Source: Paraphysomonas bandaiensis
Taxonomy: Eukaryota; Protista; Chrysophyceae
Reading direction: 5' to 3'
Assembly: GCA_965644295.1 (NCBI GenBank)
Contig: CBFFRP010000485.1
Span: forward strand, 1 to 63,058
Length of the DNA: 63,058 nucleotides
In this document: piece after piece, positions 1,300 to 44,146 of the stretch
Numbering within the stretch: position 1 is the stretch's first letter
Layout of the letters: each line of letters starts with the position of its first letter
Notes under the pieces: model-generated
What the model was told of the DNA's origin: nothing
Database searches by the model: none
The model's input: only the letters and a program-made list of their open reading frames with translations
Translations under genes and position numbers: made by a program

Positions 1300-1477
1300 T
1301 TTATTCGTTTACATAAGTAACACTTACATTATTCTCTCTTCTACTATACAATCATAGGGCTATGAGCGGGCAGAACAATATCTGCTGGCTGACTATATAT
1401 ATTCCCTAAGAACTCTCCGGTTCTTATCCCCTAGCCAGAACACCACGAAACGGTGCGAGTCCTACTTTGTTTAGGGC
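1300..1477 (-). mobile_element. Degenerate 5'-end fragment of the unclassified TSD-flanked element family (see 41078-42292)
   Basis: ggctatgagcgggcagaacaatatctgc...ccagaacaccacgaaacggtgcgagtcctactttgtttagggc matches about 42163-42292 and ends at the same GGGC terminus. Confidence 0.8.
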
Positions 1478-10023: not shown

Positions 10024-11493
<1,470 letters not shown>

Positions 11494-17673: not shown

Positions 17674-18870
17674 TCGCACTGTATGTGTAAATGCGTACAG
17701 CAGACGTATATGATATATGTGTTCAAACACATGTACTTAAAGCCGATATGGACGTGAATGAGAGAAGACCGAATTAACTGTTGATGACAACAAGAGGAAG
17801 TGAATCGTCAAGCTATTAAGTGAGAAACTGTCTTGAGAGCAAGAGAACGTAAAGCTGTATGTGATTCACAACTTCCTCAGCGCTATATTGCGTGATTTGA
17901 AACAGTCGTGGCGTCAAAAATCTTAACTCTACTATGAGTTTATATCTGGCGAATGTTTTGTTGTTGATAAATCAGTCACCGCTTATCCTGTCGACATTTC
18001 CTACTGTCATGGGATTTCGTTTGGAGTCATAGAGTCCTGGTATTTGTGACTTGGCGATAGTTCTATTCATCCCGATACCATTTCTATGATTATTACAATA
18101 AAACAACATATTGATATAGGCCTAGTAGGATGTTATAGTCCGCACCATAACAATAACACTTTACTACATCTCCGCATTCCATTACTGCATCTCTGTTTAT
18201 TATGAGGAGGGGTACGAAATATATTGCAATATCAGTATTGGTTTACTCATACTAGAGTGCAATAAATGACAGCATATCAAATATAATATTTATTACTAAG
18301 CGTGAATTTTTTCAATCAGTAGTAGAAAGAACAAGGATGCAGTATTAGCCTAACTATTAGTCTATATTCCTATATTCCAAATTATTAATTGATGAAATCA
18401 TAATTTGAGCAGAGCAACATCAGAAGCAAGCTTTTATTACACCAAGCTCATTTTCAAATGAACATCTTTGTTAGATAATTATCAGAATTTTTTTATATTC
18501 AAGTAAAGCTTCTTATATGCTCATTAGTTATTATATGGTACATATTGACTATTGGTCATCTTCACAATTAAGATCGTTAAAAGAAGTTATTGTAATCAAA
18601 CTAGATAGGCTCTTTTTTATTGCATACACTATTGCGTGCGTTGTCATGTAAAACATGTATGTCAACAACATGAAAATTTATATCGTTCATATCAACCATT
18701 TGCTCAACTTCCGTATCTTGAATCGTCATGATACAATACTTCATTTTCACAATTATAGCTATATATAATAGTATCTTTGACTAATACAGTACTATCTTAG
18801 AGAACCATACGTATTCCAACAGTACAAACATGCTCGAATAAAGTTATCGAAGCCTCTACAGACACAAATC

Positions 18871-19251
18871 CCCCCTCAGCAAAGTAGGACCCGCCCCTTC
18901 TCGTGGTGTTCTGGGGGATAAGTATCGGGAAACTATTCGATAAGATATCTTCGGGAAACTAACGTGAGCCGCAAACACACCACACTAGATAACGTTCTGC
19001 CCACTCATAGTCAAATATTTGTGTGATACAAGGGAGACTAATACATTGAATGATGTCTTACTATTTCAACAGGAGTTTAGAGAGCGAAAGGGGTTGCACG
19101 TTGGTGCTTGCGGTGACACACAAGCAGCTTTCGTAGCGCTAAATAGTAGGATATATATTATCGAGATAAGAACTAGTTGGTTAAATTGTTTTGCTACATT
19201 AGTTCTGACTCTTAGACGCCTATTGCTAATAATAAGACATTCACTGCTATT
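18871..19251 (+). mobile_element. Internally deleted (381 bp) copy of the unclassified element family with a 10-bp TSD
   Basis: GACACAAATC at 18861-18870 and 19252-19261; keeps the family 5' motif (CCCTCAGCAAAGTAGGAC...) and the 3' motif (...TATTGCTAATAATAAGACATTCA). Confidence 0.8.
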
Positions 19252-20045
19252 GACACAAATCAAGTGTGTATGCATGGGTTTATCTCTTTGTATTAAGAAA
19301 AAAATCTTCAATATGGTAGTGTCGGTTTTCTGATGTCCTAAGATTGTGGGATTCGGTGGCTATGGGATGAAGGAGACCGTGGAACTGCACTGGACTTGTG
19401 GCCACACGAGAACCTATTCCCATTATTTAATTATAGCAAAAAAGCGGATATAATATGATGTATGGAATACACAATGCCTGCATTCATACATATAACGGGA
19501 ATGAGTATTACACTCCCATGCTACTAATCGAATAGTTTGTTTAATGACTAACACCAAACCTAGCCATTCTAGCCATATTGTAAACTGAATTTTTTTTATG
19601 ACTAGGAATATCCTCCATTATGACTATAGGTCTAAAATATAGTTCCCGTATTAGTCATTCTCCAACAATTCACGCGTGTTACACAGAATTTACAAAATTA
19701 CAATTACACAACAGTAAAATTCAGATTTTGAAGCAAGCAGCGTGAAATAGCGTCAACTTTTTTTATTTCTTTACACTCACAGAATCTGCTGGCTTTAATA
19801 TTGTAATTATTGAAGAATTTATTTTGACACATTTCGGATCGTATGCCAGTATCGGATATCGAAAGCCACCTGATAGGTACTGTTCAAAACAATAATAATT
19901 CTGTCGTATGCCCCAACGCATGCTTCTAAGTCCAACCTAGCTGTTTTCATGTTCTCTCATTTTTGCAAAAGCCCAACATGTGCTATACTTCTTATTAATT
20001 TGATATAACATACATCATCATGTATGTATGTATGTCGAAGATAGA

Positions 20046-20522
20046 ATATTGAAAGTCTTTTTATTTAGCAATAGAGGCGTTAAAAACTCGTGCCAATATA
20101 GTGGCTAGTTGAATGCTAGACATACTAGTTAGACCTCTACCCATAACTAATCAGCACAAATTCTATTATCCTACTATTTAGCGCTACAGAAGCTGCTTGT
20201 GCGTCGCCGCAAGCACCAAGGTGCGACCACTTTCGTTCTTGATGTTGTTTGTGATTTTCGCCCTGCTCGTGAGTCTTAGTACTCACTGGCGCGTGTTGTC
20301 CGGAGGTCTCCCCTTGGGATAAGGTTCCACCACTGCAGGCTCTGATGCACAGGGTTATGCATTAAGGTCCTAAGTGTTCCGAGCACTAGATGTGCGTGTT
20401 GTGGTGGTTTGTGGCTTAGTCGCCGTGCACCGTTTGAGCGTCGCGCATAGGTGTAGTTGCCGGAGACGGCGTCGCTGTCTAGGGCCTGATGATGTCATGC
20501 GGTCCGGTGCTGTGGTCCTAAG
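20046..20522 (-). mobile_element. 5'-truncated relative of the same family with a 13-bp TSD
   Basis: TGTCGAAGATAGA at 20033-20045 and 20523-20535; 20170-20240 is the reverse complement of 19080-19150; the minus-strand 3' end reads AAGACTTTCAATAT. Confidence 0.78.
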
Positions 20523-21198
20523 TGTCGAAGATAGATGTATATCAGTTCTGGATGATCTACGCGCGTTCAGCTACAGATATAGTTTGCTGCAAAGTTTCAA
20601 TATTCTTGTTGTTGGGCCATGCTTCTTAGATTCCAGTTTTCGTAGCTAGCCCTGCAATTTACTGGCTAGATGTTATGCTGATTTAAATATTTAGCAGTCT
20701 ACTCTAGACTGTACTTGGTAATGTGGTAATGCATCAATAATATTCACCAGCTATAAATTATTGCAATAACAATACTTTAAAAAATAGTAGACAAATGTAA
20801 TCTAAGCTGGATTATTTTTTTAGAATGGAGGGTTAAAGTCCGAGTCTTAAAATTCTGCAAATTCCAATGTAAAATTGTAGCGCATCCCCATGATGTACAT
20901 ATGCCCACAAGTTCATTAAAATTAATTAAAATTGCTGAGTTGTTTAGTCGTATTGCCAATATATTATTAGCATTGCAATGGTAAATGAAAACCATTGGAG
21001 TCATAAAATACTGAGAACATACTCCAAATGGAACTAGGAAAAAACACATAAAGGAACATCAAGTTTCAAGAAATGGCTAGGTTCTTTCATTTCAACACAG
21101 TAACGATTACAGTAAAATACCGACGAATAAACCGCAGAAACACACAACAGAGGTGAAAAACACCCCACAAAGTCATCCAAATGTAAGGTAGAAACAGC

Positions 21199-23399: not shown

Positions 23400-24559
23400 A
23401 CATGTGTGACTTATTGACAAATGTGGGATCAGCAGTAAATAAGATATATTCGCCAACCTGCGTATGCTTTTGTACTTCTGTATTATGGTGAAAAGCTGTC
23501 CTAATTAGTTATATGTTACATACATATGTATCCTCTATACAAAGTAGATAATAGTACGACGTTGTTGAGGACACAAAGCAGAAGTAAACAGGCTAGGGAA
23601 AAGTGCATTGCGATAGATGATAGTATTGTAAGCTAGCTTACCGTCAAAAATATAGCCATACTCTCTCTTCTAACTTTTTCAACAATATAATTGCCATACA
23701 TGAGTATCATTAAAGTACTCACTGCTTAGCTACTCACAATTTTACTCATCCTCTGAGTATCACCACTTAATAAAGATATACATGCAGGTGGTCACAAGCA
23801 GCATCCTATTAAGTATTAAATGTATGAGGAGTTATAAAAATTAAAAATACTATATTCTACTATATACTGTGTCACACAAAGAACGGATTAACATTTATTG
23901 TAAATGGGTGTGAATATTATATACAAGTAGCAGTCACTACACTTTATTTACGTCCCAAGGATATGTTTTCAGACCATCCTCCATATTTTCAGCAAGTTTC
24001 ATGCAATTTTCCAGGCTTTGCTATTACCCCAAAATTTTATAAACTAATGCAGCACTGTCAGACAAGGCGAGGCTAATAATACAACTGCCCCATATTGACA
24101 GCGTAGCTAATTACTGCGTGCGGCCCTCTAGTGGGTGCTGCTGAGTGCTGCGATTGCTCGCCTCTACCTATGTACACATTGCTTAGTTCAGCAGTTCCCC
24201 ACTCCGGGTTCTCATTGCATATTCAGCACTGAATACCATGTGATAATGATGTAGCTAGTTGGGTTCAGTAGGTAGCTATCACATGATGTATGGGACTTAA
24301 ATCATGTATTAGTTAGGTACCCACCCGACCCCCACCTGGATCTACCTAAGTACGCGCTCAGAATGGGGCAACAACTGTGTGTGCTACGACGCCCATGTTG
24401 GGGTGAAGAAGAATTTCCTTCCGGATAAGATATATGAACGGTCCATCATTACAAGGACATATTTCCAATAAAAATTTCCAAAGATAGTCAGCAAAGCTTG
24501 AACCTGTTGAATCGTCAGAAGAAGGGATGCCGAAGAAGATGAATTCTCTAATATTTTCA

Positions 24560-30701: not shown

Positions 30702-31199
30702 CATTTACATTCAAACCTTGTATAGCTGTAAATTTGCATTCGTGTACTACGTGCTGTCCATATCACACTTAAATTTTACTTGACTTTCTTGTGTATTGCG
30801 TGTAATAGAATTATACTTCCTGTCAAGCAATGAGCTGCCAAATGGCGGATGTATACAGCAATAAAATATGGTGTTTTTCTTGTTACACCTATAACAGGGT
30901 TAGTGGGGTGATTTTTCTTTCCGCTCAGTGCGATTTCGTATCATTGATCTTATATAGAATTTTGCCTAAAGAAAGCAGTTAAATAATGTAGTTTAAGGTT
31001 TCTAATTTATTATCCCTTTGTGAAGTATACAGCAGTTAAAGACGGCATATTAAGAAATCAATATAACTGTGCTAAATAGATTATAGCTAAACTAAAATAT
31101 AGTGTCGACGGTTTGTGTAGCACCCTATGTCTAGCATTCAACTAGCCACTACATTGGTGCAGGTTTTTAACGCCGGCCTATTGCTAAATAATAAGACTT

Positions 31200-31394
31200 T
31201 CAGTGTATATGGTGTAACACCCTCCTATTGGTGTCAGCATCATCTAATACCATAGCGAGTTCAATATCTCTGACGCGCTGCTCATCAACACACGATATCG
31301 ACTGTTGTTCTTCAATAATCATTGCTCTGATCCTTCTCAGTGCTAAATGAAACAAACTAGAGTCATGAACCTCCATTTTAGGTTCTCCCTCCAT
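31200..31394 (-). other. Short ORF (64 aa) in an AT-rich relic, homologous to 56496-56690
   Basis: Protein similarity and upstream DNA similarity to the 56.5-56.76 kb segment. Confidence 0.5.
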
Positions 31395-33209: not shown

Positions 33210-36200
33210 ATGCTGATATAACAACCCTGCATACCTCGGGCCATCTTCCGTCATCTGTTGTACACGCTGCATGTACTTGTGTATGTATCCAGGGCGGATA
33301 TCATATACGTCGATAGTCAGTCTAATGCCACGGCAGATTCTTGTGGACCCACAGTACTCATGGCGTGCTCCACCATCGAGTCTGGCTCAGGAACACGGGT
33401 GACACCATCCAGCTGCAGCCGGGTTTATATTCGGGACCAGGAAATGAAAACCTGGTAACTGTAAACTCTACTATCGAAGACACTCGACTCATTGGAAATG
33501 GATTACCTGAAGATATTGTAATTCAGTGCTCTCGTGAAAACCGTTTTTTGACTGACCAACATTATTTCCTTGGACACATCAGTAATGTTCTAATACGGAA
33601 CTGTTCTGCGCTGGATACAACACTCAGAGTATTTGGCGATGGAGGTGCAGTGATATTTGGCGGTAGCACTACACAAGTTGTGGTTAATAATACTATATTT
33701 GTGGACAATATGGCTCGCAACGGTGGTGCGGTTTTTATTGATGAAGGATCACTTCTAATATCACGGTGTTCGTTTCGTCACAATGAGGCTGTCCTCTGGG
33801 GTGGTGCACTAGCGTCGCTTTATAGTGGTATAACCATCATAGGTAGTGTATTTGAGGGAAACCGCGCGCATGGAAACCTTGACGATGAGCACGCCGTTGA
33901 CTTCGACATGGACGAGGCAGGAAAAGGGGGTGCCATTCATCTGAATGGTGGGTCGAGGTTGACATTGCTTCGCAGTACATTGAACCGCAATTATGCTCAG
34001 CTGACCGGGGGATCTGTAAACCTTAATCTGGTGGCGGGAGCTACCATAATAAAATGTACTTTTGAGGACAACATGGTGTTCGGCGGTGATATAATATGCA
34101 CCTCGGATCCAATATGTGAGGTGAGAGGCGGTGCTGTTTATATCAAAGACATTGCGCTCGATATGCGTAACTCTACATTCTCTGGTAATATCGCTGTTAC
34201 CAAGGACATAAGTCAGGCATGTGAATTGTACGCTTATTTGTGCTTTTTTGAAGTTGTGCTCGTGTAGTTTGCAGAGGGCGGTGCCATCATATTCACTTCG
34301 GACTCATTCATTAACGATCGCATTCAGTCAGACCTCAGTAACTGTACTTTTTTTTAACAATTCCGCCAGGTGTGTCGGAGACAATAACGCAGGGGGGTAC
34401 GGGGGGGCAATTTTCAGTGACGGGATTCCAATATACATAACAAAGTCGAGATTTGAGGCCAACAGCTTACAGTCTGATGGGCTATTTACTGAGTTCTCAT
34501 CAATTGGAGGTGCTGGATATTACGACATCTGCAGTGGGCGAAATTGTTGACTCTCATTTTACTAGGAATGTTGCCCAGGGTGGGAAAGCTGGTGCGGTGT
34601 ACCTCATTGAGTCTTCTCGTGTAACGATGAAAAACTGCACTTTCTTGGGGAACTCGGCTATTTCCTCATACGTGTTTATGACGCAGGGAGGGGCAGTTGG
34701 AATAGGACACTCATCCTATGCCGTTGTGGAGTGGTGCAGGTTTGTAGACAACTATGCCCAGCCTGAACCAGGAGTATATCCGAAGACATATAGTGGATCC
34801 GGTGGTGCCATATTTGCTATGTCGTCAGGAGGAAACGTAACACATTCGTTCTTCGTATCCAACACTGCCCTGTCTGGTCAGTTTGACTCAGGGGCCTGGG
34901 GGGGAGCTGTGGGACTTGAAAATGCATTGGAGTTTACGATCACAGACTCTATCTTTATGCTAAATTTCGCTCATGAGTTTTACGGTACTGATACCTACTC
35001 AAGTAGGGTTCTGGGGGAGCTGCGGCGGTAACATTCTCCTCTATAACGTTTCAGCGATGCCTTTTCCAGGACAATTGGGTATCTGCTGGAGGATCTCAGT
35101 ACAGTGTTGGTGGCGGAGTGGCAGTTTTTTACCAGTATGCTTCTGATACGGACTAGCCTTCTCTCTACGGAGTGGTATTTTCCGACTGTCAACATAATGT
35201 TGCAGGCGGGGAAGTATGCACGTCGTCAACTGTGTACCGCGCAGGGCAGGGTGGGGGAATAGGGGCTTCATTCCGGGGTTTATTGATCAACGACACCGAT
35301 TTTCATGACAATATGGCAATGACAGATTCAAGGGGGCTTGTATTTTCATTCGGCGGTGCGATAGTATACTCACAGGGTTCACGTATTGAATGCAACGGGT
35401 GCAAGTTTAGAAAGAATATTGCCTGGAACGGCCTCGGGGATGATATTTGCTCAGGGTATGAGGATGTGCAAGATGCGGGAGAAATGAATCTCCTTCTTAA
35501 TGATCCCCTATTAGATGCTGCAAGTAATATGGAAGCATTTAGAATATATGAGCGTTTTACACTTGTCGCTCAATCTGTATGTGATCACAAAGATTTTTCG
35601 TTGAGTGGTTATCCTGCAATTGCCCTGACGCTGGTTGAGACCATTTGCGCATTGGATGGTGGACATATCGCTCCCTATTCATGGAACACTGCTGTTGATG
35701 AGCATGTAATGTACTTGTGGCCAAAATTTAACCGCATATCCCGTTTCTCGGAAACCGACGCTTTGGCGGTAACAAGCACTGGCCTCAGACAACTTCAGAT
35801 CGAAACAAGAAGCCGAGTATACCCCTCCATACTAACAACGTCTGGAAATGGATATATATATCGACCAGTATTCAACAATACGTATGAAATATGCGCTGGT
35901 GATCTCGTGACGGTCCTGGTACATGCTACAGATAGTTCTGAGACCAGCAGTGTAGCTGAACTACTCGCAGAAGTTCTACTCTTGTTATCATAGGTAACAT
36001 AAGTACTTCTGACTTGGTTTTGGTGGGAATCACAGCCAATGTAACAATCGTTGATCAATCCTCAACAGATCTGTATTTATTCAGTCCTTAGTGATGGTAA
36101 ACAGTATACTTTATTTGTCTAATAATATGACAGTTCTAGATTCCAGTGCTCTGATGGGAGCTATGGTAAGTTCATACGTCCTTCCAAGTATATCGAATTG

Positions 36201-39450: not shown

Positions 39451-39915
39451 ATCAGATGCAGAGGAAAAGATTGAGCATGATTCATTCCCTAAAATCAACA
39501 GCGAAGAGCACTCCTTTGAAACACCCAGTATATGAGGCCGACCTCTTCTCCCTTATCTTCGTTGCGTATCATCTTTTACCTCCTCTGCAGATAGATTATT
39601 GATGCCACTGAGGTTCAAGACGAGCATCATTCTCCGGAGGAAACCGTATCTGTAATATAACATGATGTAAAGGAAATCATATTATTATTGAATATACTAC
39701 AATCTGGGCGTTTATACGAATATTGATATGTTGATATGAGGCCACAGATCATTCGAAGTATTTGTGTGCTAAATTGGCATTTAAAGCATGTAAACTAAAC
39801 CATATAAATTATAATTACATTTTAAAATGACATGATATTATATATATACTTTAGAGATCTACCTTATCACTCTTAAATGTAAGTTTGGTCACATCAAAGA
39901 ATACGCAGTGTTCTT

Positions 39916-42334
39916 TTGTTAAAAATCTAATTATTAAGAAGCGCAAGCTTGTGCGTTGCCGCGACCAACCTAACAACTCGCGCGACACTAAGCATAACAG
40001 GACTCTAATCTAGTTACTATTGCATGCACCGACAAGTACTCAACTATACGACACGACTTAGTTAGCTACGAGTTGCGTGTTTAAGCCGGATCATACGCTC
40101 CTGCCCAATCTACTTGTCCTAACACAAACAACTTGCGGTCGGCGGTCGGTGTCTTCAGCATATGTCTCCTGTATATGCGGCAGATCTTTAGGGCCCTCTT
40201 CAAGGTGGTGTTCACAGCAGCAGGTAGTCTGGAGGGGAGAGTAGAGTAGCTCTAGCGCCGGGTCCTCCCACAGTCACGAAGCGGTCTCACTGGTGCAATT
40301 TTTCACGCTGACGCATGAAACATATGTCTACCAAAATCTGTTACAAATTCAAGCTGACTCCAATGTCTCCCCTCTATTATGTGCACTCGTTTAGCACAGG
40401 CATCCACCTTGCACTCTTCTCCCGAGTGGCTTACGCTAGTAGGAAACCGCGCACCTTCTCCGCTCGAATAAAAACCTACTAAAGTAAGAAATAACATAAA
40501 AGCACACACAAATGTACCTGACACTGCTTGGAGAACAGTGCCAGAGCCTTGATATAATCTCAAGGACCTGGGTCAGGAGAAACCAAGACTAGGCAGTAGG
40601 CGTGTGAGAAGGCACGACAGATCTAATCACATCATTGCCATAATAGTATGCATCTATATATGAGAAAAGTTTGACGCATTACCTCGGTCATTGGCCACAC
40701 AGATACCGAATAATGTGAACTCATACTCAACACCAATCACTCAAAGCAAACGCAGTGAGCAAGCAGAATGTTGATATACCTGACATCTGCTGACTTCAGG
40801 TTTCTTGAGTTCTTAAGGTGAACTCATCCCGGATGCTTAATTTCAGCAGGCAGCCCAATACCCCGGTTACCCTTAAGGTGAGCCCATTCCAGGATGCCTG
40901 TTTATTCGTCAGGGCCCAAAGAAATATACACAAGTGACACTTATTAGTTTCCCTCTTGTACCACACAAGCAGTAGGCTACGAGTGGGCAGAACAATATCT
41001 GCTGACTATATAATATGCGGCTCACGTCAGTTTCTCGGAGAAATATCTCCGGTACTTATCCCCCAGATCACCACGAATATTGAAAATCTGATTATTAAGA
41101 AGCGCAAGCTTGTGCGTTGCCGCGACCAACCTAACAACTCGCGCGACACTATGCATAACATGACTCTCATCTAGTTACTATTGCATGCACCGACAAGTGC
41201 TCAACTATACAACACGATTTAGTTAGCTACATGGGCATACGACGAGTTGCGTGTTTAAGCCGGATCATACGCTCCTGCCCAATCTACTTGTCCTAACACA
41301 AACAACTTGCGGTCGGTGTCTTCGGCATATGTCTCCTGTATATGCGGCAGATCTTTAGGGCCCTCTTCAAGGTGGTGTTCACAGCAGCAGGTAGTCTGGA
41401 AGGGAGAATAAAGTAGCTCCTATAGCGCCGGGTCCTCCCACGGTCACGAAGCGGTCTCACTGGTGCAATTTTGCACACTACTGACGCATGAAACAGACAT
41501 CTACCAAAATCTGTTACAAATTCAAGCTGACTCCAATGTCTTCCCTCTATTGTGTGCACTCGTCCAGCACATGCATCCACCTTGCACTCTTCTCCCGAGT
41601 GACTTACACTAGTAGGAAACCGTGCACCTTCCCCGCTCGGATGAAAACCTACTAAAAGCAAGAATAACATAAAAGCACCACAAATGTACCTGACACTGCT
41701 TGGAGAACAGTGCCAGAGCCTTGATATAATCTCAATGACCTGGGTCAGGAGAAACCAAGACTAGGCAGTAGACGTGTGAGAAGGCACGACAGGTCTAATC
41801 ACATCATTGCCATTGCCATGCATCCATGAGGAAAGTTTGACGCATTACCTCGGTCATTGGCCACACAGATACCGAATAATGTGAACTCATACTCAGCATC
41901 AATCACTCAAAGCAAACGCAGGGAGCAAGCAGAATGTTGATATACCTGACATCTGCTGACTTCAGGTGTTTTGAGTTCTTAAGGTGAACATCCCGGATGC
42001 TTAACTTCAGCAGGCAGCCCAATACCCCGGTTACCCTTCTGGTGGGCCCTGTCCCGGATGCCCTTGAGGTGGGCCCATTCCCGGATGCCTGTTTATTCGT
42101 CAGGGCCCAAAGACGTCTACACAAGTGACACTTATTAGTGTCCCTTGTACCACACAAGCAGTAGGCTATGAGTGGGCAGAACAATATCTGCTGACTATGT
42201 TTGCGGCTCACGTTAGTTTCCCAGAGAGAATCTCTCCGGTACTTATCCCCCAGAACACCACGAAAAGGTGCGAGTCCGACTTTGTTGAGGGCCAGATCAC
42301 CACGAAAAGGTGTGAGTCCGACTTTGTTGAGGGC
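39916..42334 (-). mobile_element. Two nested copies of about 1.2 kb of an unclassified non-autonomous element: copy B (41078-42292) inserted into the 5' end of copy A (39916-41077 plus 42293-42334)
   Basis: The two copies align along their length; copy B is flanked by CAGATCACCACGAA (41064-41077, 42293-42306); copy A is flanked by AGTGTTCTT (39907-39915, 42335-42343). Confidence 0.88.
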
Positions 42335-44146
42335 AGTGTTCTTATAAATTACGATTGCTATATACTGTATATTTTTTCCTTGAATTGAGGCGTGCTAGGG
42401 ATGTTGAGTTTTGCTTATTTGTTGAGTTTTACTATATGGAAGAAAGCTTTACTTTAAAAGAGTTATAAGTTATTTAAAAACATATTATATTATTATGACC
42501 TTTTCTTGGGAGTGTCTATCTATTATTGTAAATATTGGTTGGTAGAAGTGACAATTTCAATACAGTAAATAAATGCCAAAGACTCAATGGCTGTTATAAA
42601 TGATAATCGCAATATTAATTGAGAGCGTGTTGTACTTCAAGCTCAGTTTTACTTACTTCTAACGTGCAATGTCAAAATATTATAAGGAACTATAATAATA
42701 TATATTAAGAACCCTCAACAACGTTTTCGTAGTCTTAAATATAGTGGGGTATATAGGAGTTAAGATAAATTAGTAGTTCTGATTCTTTAACGCCTATATT
42801 ATTGCTAATAGTAAGACATTCAGTACAAGATTATCAACTGCTTAGCTAACTAGTCATAATTTACTCATCGCGTCATGATTGAATAAGCTACGCATACATC
42901 CAGCCACAACAAGTGTCACACCTAATATAAGTGTTAAGTGCATAAGGAATTATACATTATTAGCGTAACACTGAGAAAAGCCTGAAGTCAGCAAATGTCA
43001 GGTATATAGCAACATTCTGCGTACATACAGCGTTTGCTTATCAGAGTTAAGCACCAGTTAGTTTAATTGTATTGCTACATTAGTTATTAGTTCTGAATTT
43101 TACACGTCTATTGCTAATAATAAGACATTTACTACTTTGAGATAGGCCTCGATATGATGAGCATGATGTGCTCCACTATAAAGAAGTACAGACTACATGA
43201 TGACTTCTGCACCTGCCTGTAATCATGTGGTATTATATCAATTTTTCTTTTTATATTGTTGAGATGACCCACATTATATGATATCAACTACACCACATGA
43301 CCCGACTGAATGCTATATTGATTCACTACACTCCCATCAACAAATCATTTACAATGTTAGATAGTCACGATCTCATACAGCTACTACATTTCAGTTTATA
43401 ATATAGATTTTTCACAGAATTCATAGAACTACTGCATATGTCACTGACAACTATAAACCTAAAAACTGAAACCACAGCGCATGATTAATAATCTTTGAGC
43501 AAACCTCAATATCGATACCTTTAAGAATAGAATTATATAAAATTAATGACATATATATTAATTTTACTTTAAATGCGGTGAGGAAGTGTATCCACGTTGC
43601 AAAAAATACAAATAATTAATAGCTATTGATCCAAAGGAGATTCGTTTTTCTTCCCTTCGCAAAAGCTCTCCTCTTTTCACTGACATGGTTCAGTCTAAAA
43701 ATTAACCCTAATCGAATTTATACGTATATAGCACAGTACTATTCAATCACACATTACACACTAGATCTGTAAAAACCAAATCGCAGTATAATTGGAACTC
43801 TGAATAGTAGCCATGTAATATCCATACATCCAACACCGTTATATTAGCCGACTATAGTGCTGCCTCATCTACTCAATCCTTACTGGGCCCCACTAATGCA
43901 CCATTTTCTCGCCATTTTCTCGCCATTTTCTCACACTGTGGATAGAAGAGATCCAGAACGAGCCGTTGGCAGAGACAGTGGCGGCACAACTGTTGCTTTG
44001 TCCTGTGAGGAAGTTAAGGCGGGGCTGCGAATGGCCCCATCGCCGACTAACATTGGTGCTACATGTACAGGAATGGAAACGATGGTCAAAGATAGGGGAT
44101 CAAGAGAAACAATCTGGCATTGAAGTTCCTCCTCCTCTGCATGATA

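Follow-up and report, generated by a model that had tools for sequence, protein, structure and literature searches.

A non-coding 1.2-kb retroposon family in Paraphysomonas bandaiensis, probably mobilised by giant APE-type LINEs and headed by a candidate ribozyme

The stretch of DNA analysed here, called the window in the following, is the 63,058-nt contig CBFFRP010000485.1 (assembly GCA_965644295.1, forward strand) of the chrysophyte Paraphysomonas bandaiensis. Direct reading of positions 39700-43300 of this window revealed two nested copies of one 1.2-kb element, both on the minus strand and referred to as copies A and B. Copy B is full-length and occupies 41078-42291; on the minus strand it runs from CCCTCAACAAAG... 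to ...TAATAATCAGATTTTCAA plus TA, its first letters being CCCTCAACAAAGTCGG. It is enclosed by a target-site duplication (TSD) of 15 bp, CCAGATCACCACGAA, which lies at 41063-41077 on the left and, read directly, at 42292-42306 on the right. Copy A is split by this insertion: its first 27 bases (CCCTCAACAAAGTCGGACTCACACCTT, read directly) are found on the minus strand at 42307-42333, and its 3' portion, from element base 28 to the end, was placed by BLAST and reading at 39916-41077 on the same strand, where it ends in ...TAATAATTAGATTTTTAACAA. The TSD of copy A is the 10-mer CAGTGTTCTT at 39906-39915, repeated identically at 42334-42343, where it was again read directly. The left TSD of copy B is itself copy A sequence, duplicated upon insertion of B; since the TSD of B lies within copy A, B must have inserted after base 42 of A, and the self-nesting described in an earlier, sequence-only reading of this DNA (the first-pass annotation) is borne out. 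By BLAST, bases 29-1213 of B match positions 41077-39919 with 89.3% identity, and A is the older of the two copies. We also looked for an empty allelic site for the nested pair; its left flank occurs only once in the assembly.

Three parts of the element are discussed below, and their positions are given here for copy B, all on the minus strand. A head module of 321 nt (41971-42291) is shared almost base for base with a SINE-like family of ~500 bp (SINE, short interspersed nuclear element). Its first 95 bases (42197-42291) can be folded into a candidate ribozyme resembling that of hepatitis delta virus (HDV), with the predicted cut just before base 1. At the opposite end, a compact 3' tail of the type seen in long interspersed nuclear elements (LINEs) covers 41078-41127 and holds a GNRA hairpin core, GCGGCAACGCACAAGC, and a terminal box, TAATAATCAGATTTTCAA(TA).

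The element has no coding capacity of its own, its longest sense open reading frames (ORFs) being of 125 and 102 aa and without a Pfam match at E<=1. No terminal repeats, either inverted (TIRs) or direct (long terminal repeat (LTR)-type ends or pseudo-LTRs), were found in it, and there is no poly(A), all as the first-pass annotation had stated; the sole internal repeat is a 27-nt doublet. ARAGORN found no tRNA-like part, and together with Rfam at E<=10 it detected no RNA polymerase III (Pol III) head of the tRNA, 7SL or 5S type; several T4 runs are present inside the element. Rfam searches at E<=10, carried out first on a 2.6-kb stretch and later on 131 nt, returned only noise and no family.

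A search of the whole genome (a 62.5-Mb assembly in 669 contigs) with copy B showed that 36 of the best 40 matches are essentially full-length and that none is longer than 1213 bp; for the 30 best copies, identity to B across bases 1-1213 is 97.6-99.1%. The family is young and recently active. When 34-mers allowing up to 3 mismatches were used as markers, the one at base 421 was counted 89 times, the one at base 901 109 times, and the one in the tail 107 times. From these counts we conclude that the family comprises ~110 copies, mostly full-length, and that its body therefore occurs in nothing more abundant. The earlier proposal of an abundant non-autonomous family thus holds for the 1.2-kb element, but not for all the copies that had been assigned to it: in the window only A and B belong here, and the rest are pieces of SINEs, LINEs or composites, apart from one unrelated fragment. 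Copies truncated at the 5' end, starting at bases 32, 95, 96 and 885, are a minority, as is also evident from the 89 markers at base 421 against 109 at base 901.

The ends of the element were examined genome-wide, as the first-pass annotation had recommended. Exact TSDs of 11-15 bp flank 26 of 29 distinct near-full copies, which is far above chance; lengths of 11, 12, 13, 14 and 15 bp were seen in 3, 5, 7, 6 and 5 copies, respectively, with a mode of 13. At the 5' side the TSDs abut a fixed first base, the C of CCCTC (CCCTCAAC...), and 26 of the 29 copies have no extra base at this junction. The shared start that had been noticed in the window, CCCT(C/A)AACAAAGT, is real; the G placed before it is part of the flank or TSD, since all other copies start at CCCTC. 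The shared end, AATAA.AGA.TTTCA, is likewise real. At the 3' side, 0-4 bases, mostly T, TA or TT, stand between ...TTCAA and the TSD, and the TSDs themselves begin mostly with T or TA, which suggests microhomology or the addition of a few bases at the priming site. With TSDs of variable length, no TIRs and a minority of 5'-truncated copies, the target-primed reverse transcription proposed in the first-pass annotation is well supported.

Some individual copies deserve mention. Three full-length copies lie 1.4-1.8 kb apart at C421:68997-73370, with the same flanks and in the same 'tatactagac' repeat context; this looks like one insertion multiplied by tandem segmental duplication and not like three separate insertions. 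At C123:495635-497585 a copy on the opposite strand lies 5 bp from the end of a match to a LINE reverse transcriptase (RT), and it appears to have inserted into a LINE. Outside this genome, one pattern scan of metagenomes for relatives gave nothing, and a second gave one chance match in a GC-rich, bacterial-looking contig.

The genome holds candidate partners for such a passenger. A search with the RVT_1 profile found many retroelements, and in one group of these the RT matches, ~830-880 nt long, lie inside open frames of 2000-3731 aa; in the same frames the Exo_endo_phos profile locates an endonuclease of the apurinic/apyrimidinic (APE) type ~2 kb upstream of the RT (for example in contigs C644, C426, C440, C433, C352 and C132). 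Frames reaching 3731 aa are found at C644:2112-13310 and on other contigs. For the RT of the LINE on contig C25, the closest among solved structures is LINE-1 ORF2p (E ~1e-8). No Pfam match was obtained for the ~770 aa that follow the RT or, in the C426 LINE copy, for the 566 N-terminal residues, and the C352 LINE is a 5'-truncated copy.

We read the 3' ends of three of these LINEs (C644, C426 and C25) and inspected four LINE 5' regions. In all three 3' ends, the stop codon is followed by GGTGCTTGC(G/A)GC(G/A)A(C/T)GCACAAGCAG, a hairpin with a GNRA loop (as RNA, GC(G/A)GC(G/A)A(C/U)GCACAAGC), whose loop-closing pair covaries among the LINEs, being G-C in one lineage and A-U in another. Downstream of the hairpin the LINE tails have a spacer of ~100 nt and then a terminal box, TAATAATCAGA(C/T).TT(C). 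The 1.2-kb element has both features at its 3' terminus: its GCGGCAACGCACAAGC agrees with the LINE hairpin core at 15/16 bases, and only four bases later it continues with TAATAATCAGATTTTC, which agrees with the C426 LINE end at 15/16 bases. Its terminal box, TAATAATCAGAYTTTC, is also present at the 3' ends of three giant LINE lineages with APE and RT domains, and an older subfamily of the 1.2-kb element carries TAATAATCAGACATTCAA, the C25 variant of this box. Such shared 3' motifs would follow the usual logic by which a passenger borrows the recognition signal of a LINE RT. The lack of poly(A) had been taken as a Penelope-like trait; because the element appears to have a structured 3' tail of LINE type, we attribute it to this tail instead, and nothing was found in favour of Penelope kinship. 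Traces of target-primed reverse transcription by such LINEs are also found in the window itself, namely a 5'-truncated LINE end of 477 bp with a TSD and a tail stub of ~80 bp with TSD-like flanks.

Two arrangements near LINE ends were recorded separately. At C25:47300-50500 a C25-type LINE with its own full tail is followed immediately by bases 885-1213 of the 1.2-kb element. We considered whether this junction represents a donor LINE whose 3' untranslated region (UTR) held the last 329 nt of the element, and rejected this, as the LINE has its own complete tail and what follows is a 5'-truncated 1.2-kb copy. The 3' flank of this fragment, an old SINE head fragment, is the same as that of a full-length 1.2-kb copy 11 kb away (C25:58290-59850), and the arrangement could be a template-switch chimera or the product of a local duplication or rearrangement. 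At ~359440-360135 of C426, an array of ~115-bp tandem repeats runs into a second, complete tail of the C426 LINE type, and array and tail together abut a truncated head-bearing element in opposite orientation; this array with its LINE tail may be another non-autonomous passenger.

The head of the 1.2-kb element is much more widespread than its body. A 34-nt pattern taken from the head was counted 1078 times genome-wide, ten times the count of the tail. Ten loci with an exact head were sampled: in seven, similarity to the 1.2-kb element is confined to bases 1 to ~321, and of the other three, one has bases 2-76 only, another matches as far as base 898 and the last is a complete 1.2-kb copy. A different tail of ~185 nt, ending in ...TTGCTAATAATAAGACTTTCAA, was found in six sampled copies with the end located, the full-length 1.2-kb copy among them; placed after the head, this tail makes elements of ~430-510 bp. 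It corresponds to the tail of the C25-type LINE, with a match of ~90% over conserved blocks. The resulting ~500-bp SINE consists of the head and, immediately after it, the terminal ~185 nt of a C25-type LINE, and resembles the 1.2-kb family in its first 321 nt, its terminal box and its TSD range. The 1.2-kb family, unlike the SINE, has a unique body of ~800 nt and a compact tail that lacks the ~110-nt spacer, and it numbers ~110 copies against ~1000 of the SINE. Because the 321-nt head is common to both and the tails and bodies differ, the 1.2-kb family is a long sibling of the ~500-bp SINE-like family. As judged from these comparisons, the build of the element is modular: the 321-nt head of a ~1000-copy, 500-bp SINE, a family-specific body of ~800 nt, and a shortened LINE tail. 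This makes the head a movable module common to families with different bodies.

It is tempting to go one step further and to speculate, quite tentatively, that the head is a portable cassette for 5' processing (a ribozyme, perhaps also a promoter) which does not belong to the LINEs, and which has been attached, with template switching as the probable route, to two or more unrelated 3' parts, the 185-nt LINE tail in one case and an 890-nt body with a minimal tail in the other. Were this so, one GNRA hairpin and a terminal box of ~17 nt would be enough for a giant LINE RT to accept a template, and 'ribozyme-headed SINEs' would form a separate class, with a self-cutting RNA in place of the Pol III promoter.

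Since the element has no Pol III head, its precise 5' start needs an explanation. An unconstrained fold of bases 1-94 contains a P1 helix (1-6/40-45), a P3-like helix (22-25/33-36) and a P4 helix (53-60/64-71), and leaves bases 9-21 and 78-94 free. These free stretches can pair as P2, bases 14-16 and 18-22 with 81-88, with one bulge. The full model of bases 1-95 thus has P1 1-6/40-45, P3 23-25/33-35, P4 53-60/64-71, CUAA at 76-79 in J4/2, and P2 14-22/81-88. In HDV-like ribozymes, the catalytic C sits at the position that CUAA (76-79) has in this model. A double pseudoknot with helices of 6, 8, 3 and 8 bp and CUAA in J4/2 can therefore be drawn, albeit with C-G as its first pair, a J3/1 of 4 nt, a weak P1.1 and a descriptor written post hoc. 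The predicted cut is at the bond before C1, and C1 is exactly the base at which the TSDs place the start of the element. When the head was dinucleotide-shuffled 100,000 times, 40 of the shuffled sequences satisfied the full double-pseudoknot descriptor from base 1, and at the observed helix lengths only 1 in 100,000 did so. Young, TSD-bearing copies include two variants of P4, GGAGAGATTCTCTCTGG and GGAGATATTTCTCCGG, both of which retain a stem of 7-8 bp.

Several observations weigh against this assignment. The descriptor is a loose one, written after the fold had been seen, and it is satisfied at ~1 in 1000 positions of the window. Searches of the head with the HDV, CPEB3 and drz families of Rfam gave no match at E<=10. 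Base 1 is a C paired to G, where the canonical pair is G.U; the link from P3 to P1 (J3/1) has 4 nt, and P1.1 amounts to one pair at most. Nor did covariation among 39 distinct genomic heads lend support: 93.2% of the positions in question were paired against 92.8%, a level reached by 32 of 500 shuffles, and the 4 double changes seen against 1.8 expected were reached by 40 of 500. These heads are mostly decayed copies of one master sequence, which is probably the reason for the absence of covariation. On balance, we regard the head as a plausible but unproven HDV-like ribozyme candidate, and give processing of the 5' end by a ribozyme about an even chance.

The chief rival to the ribozyme is an internal promoter. 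On this account the element is the same LINE-dependent retroposon, its 5' end is set by an internal RNA polymerase II (Pol II) promoter that starts at base 1, comparable to Pr77 of L1Tc or to the internal promoters of the jockey and I elements, and the HDV-like fold is fortuitous or inactive. Such a promoter would account for the precise 5' ends and for the strong conservation of the head across families with different bodies, and it fits with a ribozyme that finds no support in Rfam or in covariation; however, it leaves to coincidence that a double pseudoknot begins exactly at base 1, which happened in ~4 of 10,000 shuffles. Capped templates often leave one extra base, and the lack of such a base in 26 of 29 copies fits an uncapped end. 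We consider the promoter possible, though we would not bet on it. The two do not exclude each other in any case, as the same 77 nt of L1Tc act both as promoter and as ribozyme (PMC3383444).

For the family as a whole, we think it likely that we are dealing with non-coding, non-autonomous, non-LTR retroposons that are copied by the endonuclease and RT of the giant APE-type LINEs of this genome, a weighting that applies to the LINE-dependent core of the proposal; LINE-dependent, target-primed retroposition as such is very likely. The following sequence of events is proposed. Because there is no Pol III head and there are several internal T-runs, the element would be transcribed by Pol II, either within read-through transcripts of adjacent genes or with the head as its own start. 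The LINE protein would recognise the 3' GNRA hairpin and the terminal box, nick a T-rich target and start reverse transcription at the nick, where a T/A overlap or filler of 0-4 bases would be frequent, and a second nick 11-15 bp away would give rise to the TSD. What speaks against this proposal is how little the element shares with its putative partners: only two short motifs, the terminal box and the GNRA hairpin core, are common to it and the LINE 3' ends, and the tail upstream of them has no match in any LINE sampled. A source for the ~800-nt body was sought by blastn, tblastn and tblastx against the three LINE 3' regions and 30 RT loci, and only the head, the hairpin core and the terminal box were recovered.

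The unexplained origin of the body leaves room for the idea that the element is an internally deleted derivative, comparable to the short internally deleted elements (SIDEs) or to NARTc, of an unsampled autonomous LINE having the same head, body and tail. The design is like that of NARTc/RIME and the R2 SIDEs (PMC3414825, PMC4035085), and our inspection covered four LINE 5' regions and three 3' ends only. Against this stand the absence of any match longer than the element itself among the best 40 in the genome and the similar counts of body and tail markers (89, 109 and 107), together with translated searches of the body against three LINE C-terminal regions, which revealed no similarity. In C644, C433 and C440, which represent two LINE lineages, the 1.5-1.7 kb that precede the ORF start hold no head-like sequence, and among ~19 LINE copies on contigs numbered no higher than C199 an exact same-strand head was seen upstream in a single case, in which it belongs to a separate 1.2-kb copy. 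Since the LINEs sampled share neither a 5' end nor a body with it, the 1.2-kb element is not a deletion derivative of any of them, and descent from an unsampled LINE seems unlikely to us. A non-autonomous relative of Penelope-like elements would also lack poly(A) and have variable TSDs, yet there are no terminal direct repeats or pseudo-LTRs and no hammerhead match (Rfam, E<=10; the genome was not searched for a GIY-YIG-linked RT), and the 3' end matches those of APE-type LINEs instead; we hold this to be very improbable. For a DNA transposon, MITE (miniature inverted-repeat transposable element), Helitron or solo LTR nothing can be adduced beyond the fact that the element is a dispersed repeat, and TSDs of 11-15 bp instead of a fixed length, the lack of TIRs or LTR-type ends and a 3' end common to LINEs make it barely conceivable. 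We accordingly rejected the Penelope-like, Helitron, MITE and solo-LTR readings on the grounds of TSD lengths and end structure.

The other repeats of the window fit into the same picture of heads, tails and LINE ends. All four exact flanking duplications listed in the first-pass annotation were confirmed by reading, with the correction that the one of copy A measures 10 bp and not 9 or 11. The insertion at 18871-19251 (plus strand) is an old, internally deleted ~500-bp SINE (head 1-158 and tail pieces) and not a member of the 1.2-kb family; its 10-bp TSD, GACACAAATC, is at 18861-18870 and 19252-19261. What had been listed as a further family copy at 20046-20522 (minus strand) turned out to be a 5'-truncated 3' end of a C25-type LINE, comprising the end of the ORF and the 3' UTR tail: its bases 115-476 are 76.5% identical to the 358 nt with which the C25 LINE ends (tblastx E 1e-30), and its 13-bp TSD, TGTCGAAGATAGA, lies at 20033-20045 and 20523-20535. 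The earlier statement that the autonomous partner is missing from the window is correct in that no LINE RT is present there, although this dead 477-bp 3' end is of the partner type.

Three of the four further fragments that had been listed are related to these elements. At 1306-1477 (minus strand) there is a decayed head fragment of the ~500-bp SINE family, corresponding to bases 1-179 at 74% identity; 31125-31203 (plus strand) is a 5'-truncated SINE/LINE tail stub of ~80 bp, whose flanks resemble a 12-bp TSD with one mismatch; and 42705-43135 is a composite that combines 57 nt of the 1.2-kb body with two pieces resembling SINE tails. This composite, for which no clear TSD was found, starts with CCCTCAACAA, a head apparently lacking bases 11-25, and may be a further modular relative. 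The fourth fragment, 23715-23835, shows no similarity to parts of the 1.2-kb element, the SINE or the LINEs. The host genes of the window include those for a tyrosyl-tRNA synthetase, an ARM-repeat protein and a TauE-type exporter. The synthetase gene (10024-11493), an ordinary host gene, spans two ORFs that are probably separated by an intron, and the ORF at 33341-34267 has a weak match to PMP-type repeats of Chlamydia (E 3e-9, over the Pfam cut-off).

If the head does cleave, the genome contains more than 1000 non-autonomous retroposons with their 5' end made by a ribozyme that their LINE partners apparently lack. A SINE-like parasite could then be built with no Pol III promoter at all, and this in protists only distantly related to trypanosomes and animals. 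The very short 3' signal of hairpin and box may suffice for mobilisation in trans, which offers a testable minimal template for the little-known giant LINEs. At a practical level, the ~110 near-identical young copies will confound assembly and annotation of this genome.

The likeness of the 1.2-kb family to known systems is one of design. Canonical SINEs with LINE-derived tails are recognised by LINE RTs of the stringent type, and share with the 1.2-kb element its non-coding nature, the composite of head, body and tail, the LINE-shared 3' tail and the TSDs. The element nonetheless falls outside the canonical SINEs because it has no Pol III head of the tRNA, 7SL or 5S type, and it also differs from them in its internal T-runs and in being far longer at 1.2 kb. 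A second comparison is with R2, which uses a restriction-like endonuclease. The SIDEs of R2 in Drosophila have a 5' ribozyme and a 3' LINE UTR and are mobilised in trans (PMC3414825); the 1.2-kb family resembles them in combining a 5' ribozyme, a candidate in our case, with a LINE 3' end, and in the trans mobilisation that we propose. 28S rDNA, however, is the sole insertion target of R2, and the SIDEs arose from R2 by internal deletion, whereas the 1.2-kb family is dispersed, has TSDs of 11-15 bp and would rely on APE-type LINEs.

The trypanosomatid elements offer a parallel at the 5' end. NARTc, RIME and SIDER end in poly(A) in trypanosomes; the 1.2-kb family, in contrast, has no poly(A), a tail made of hairpin and terminal box, and a body that does not appear to be LINE-derived. 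NARTc, RIME and SIDER are the non-autonomous partners of the L1Tc/ingi LINEs (PMC3185411, PMC4035085, PMC3383444), and like the 1.2-kb family they are dispersed, non-coding passengers of APE-type LINEs, with a 5' end fixed at the point where cleavage by an HDV-like ribozyme, with C-G as the first pair of P1, would fall. In the trypanosome L1Tc group the first pair is reportedly C-G and differs in this from the G.U of HDV and R2 (PMC4035085), and the ribozyme of L1Tc, L1TcRz, is reported to have a P1.1 of one pair at best (PMC3185411). The single-pair P1.1 and the 3-bp P3 of L1TcRz thus resemble the fold proposed here, a likeness that refers to the published description and not to the Pr77 sequence. 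In trypanosomes the LINE and its passengers have the head in common, whereas the LINE 5' regions examined here are without it. Of the RIME/NARTc/SIDE likeness suggested in the first-pass annotation, the design stands, with a possible ribozyme head and a LINE tail, and the origin does not, as the element is not a deletion derivative of any of the LINEs sampled. The 1.2-kb family is in this sense a design of a known kind in an unusual form: a SINE/SIDE-like, LINE-dependent retroposon with a possible self-cutting head.

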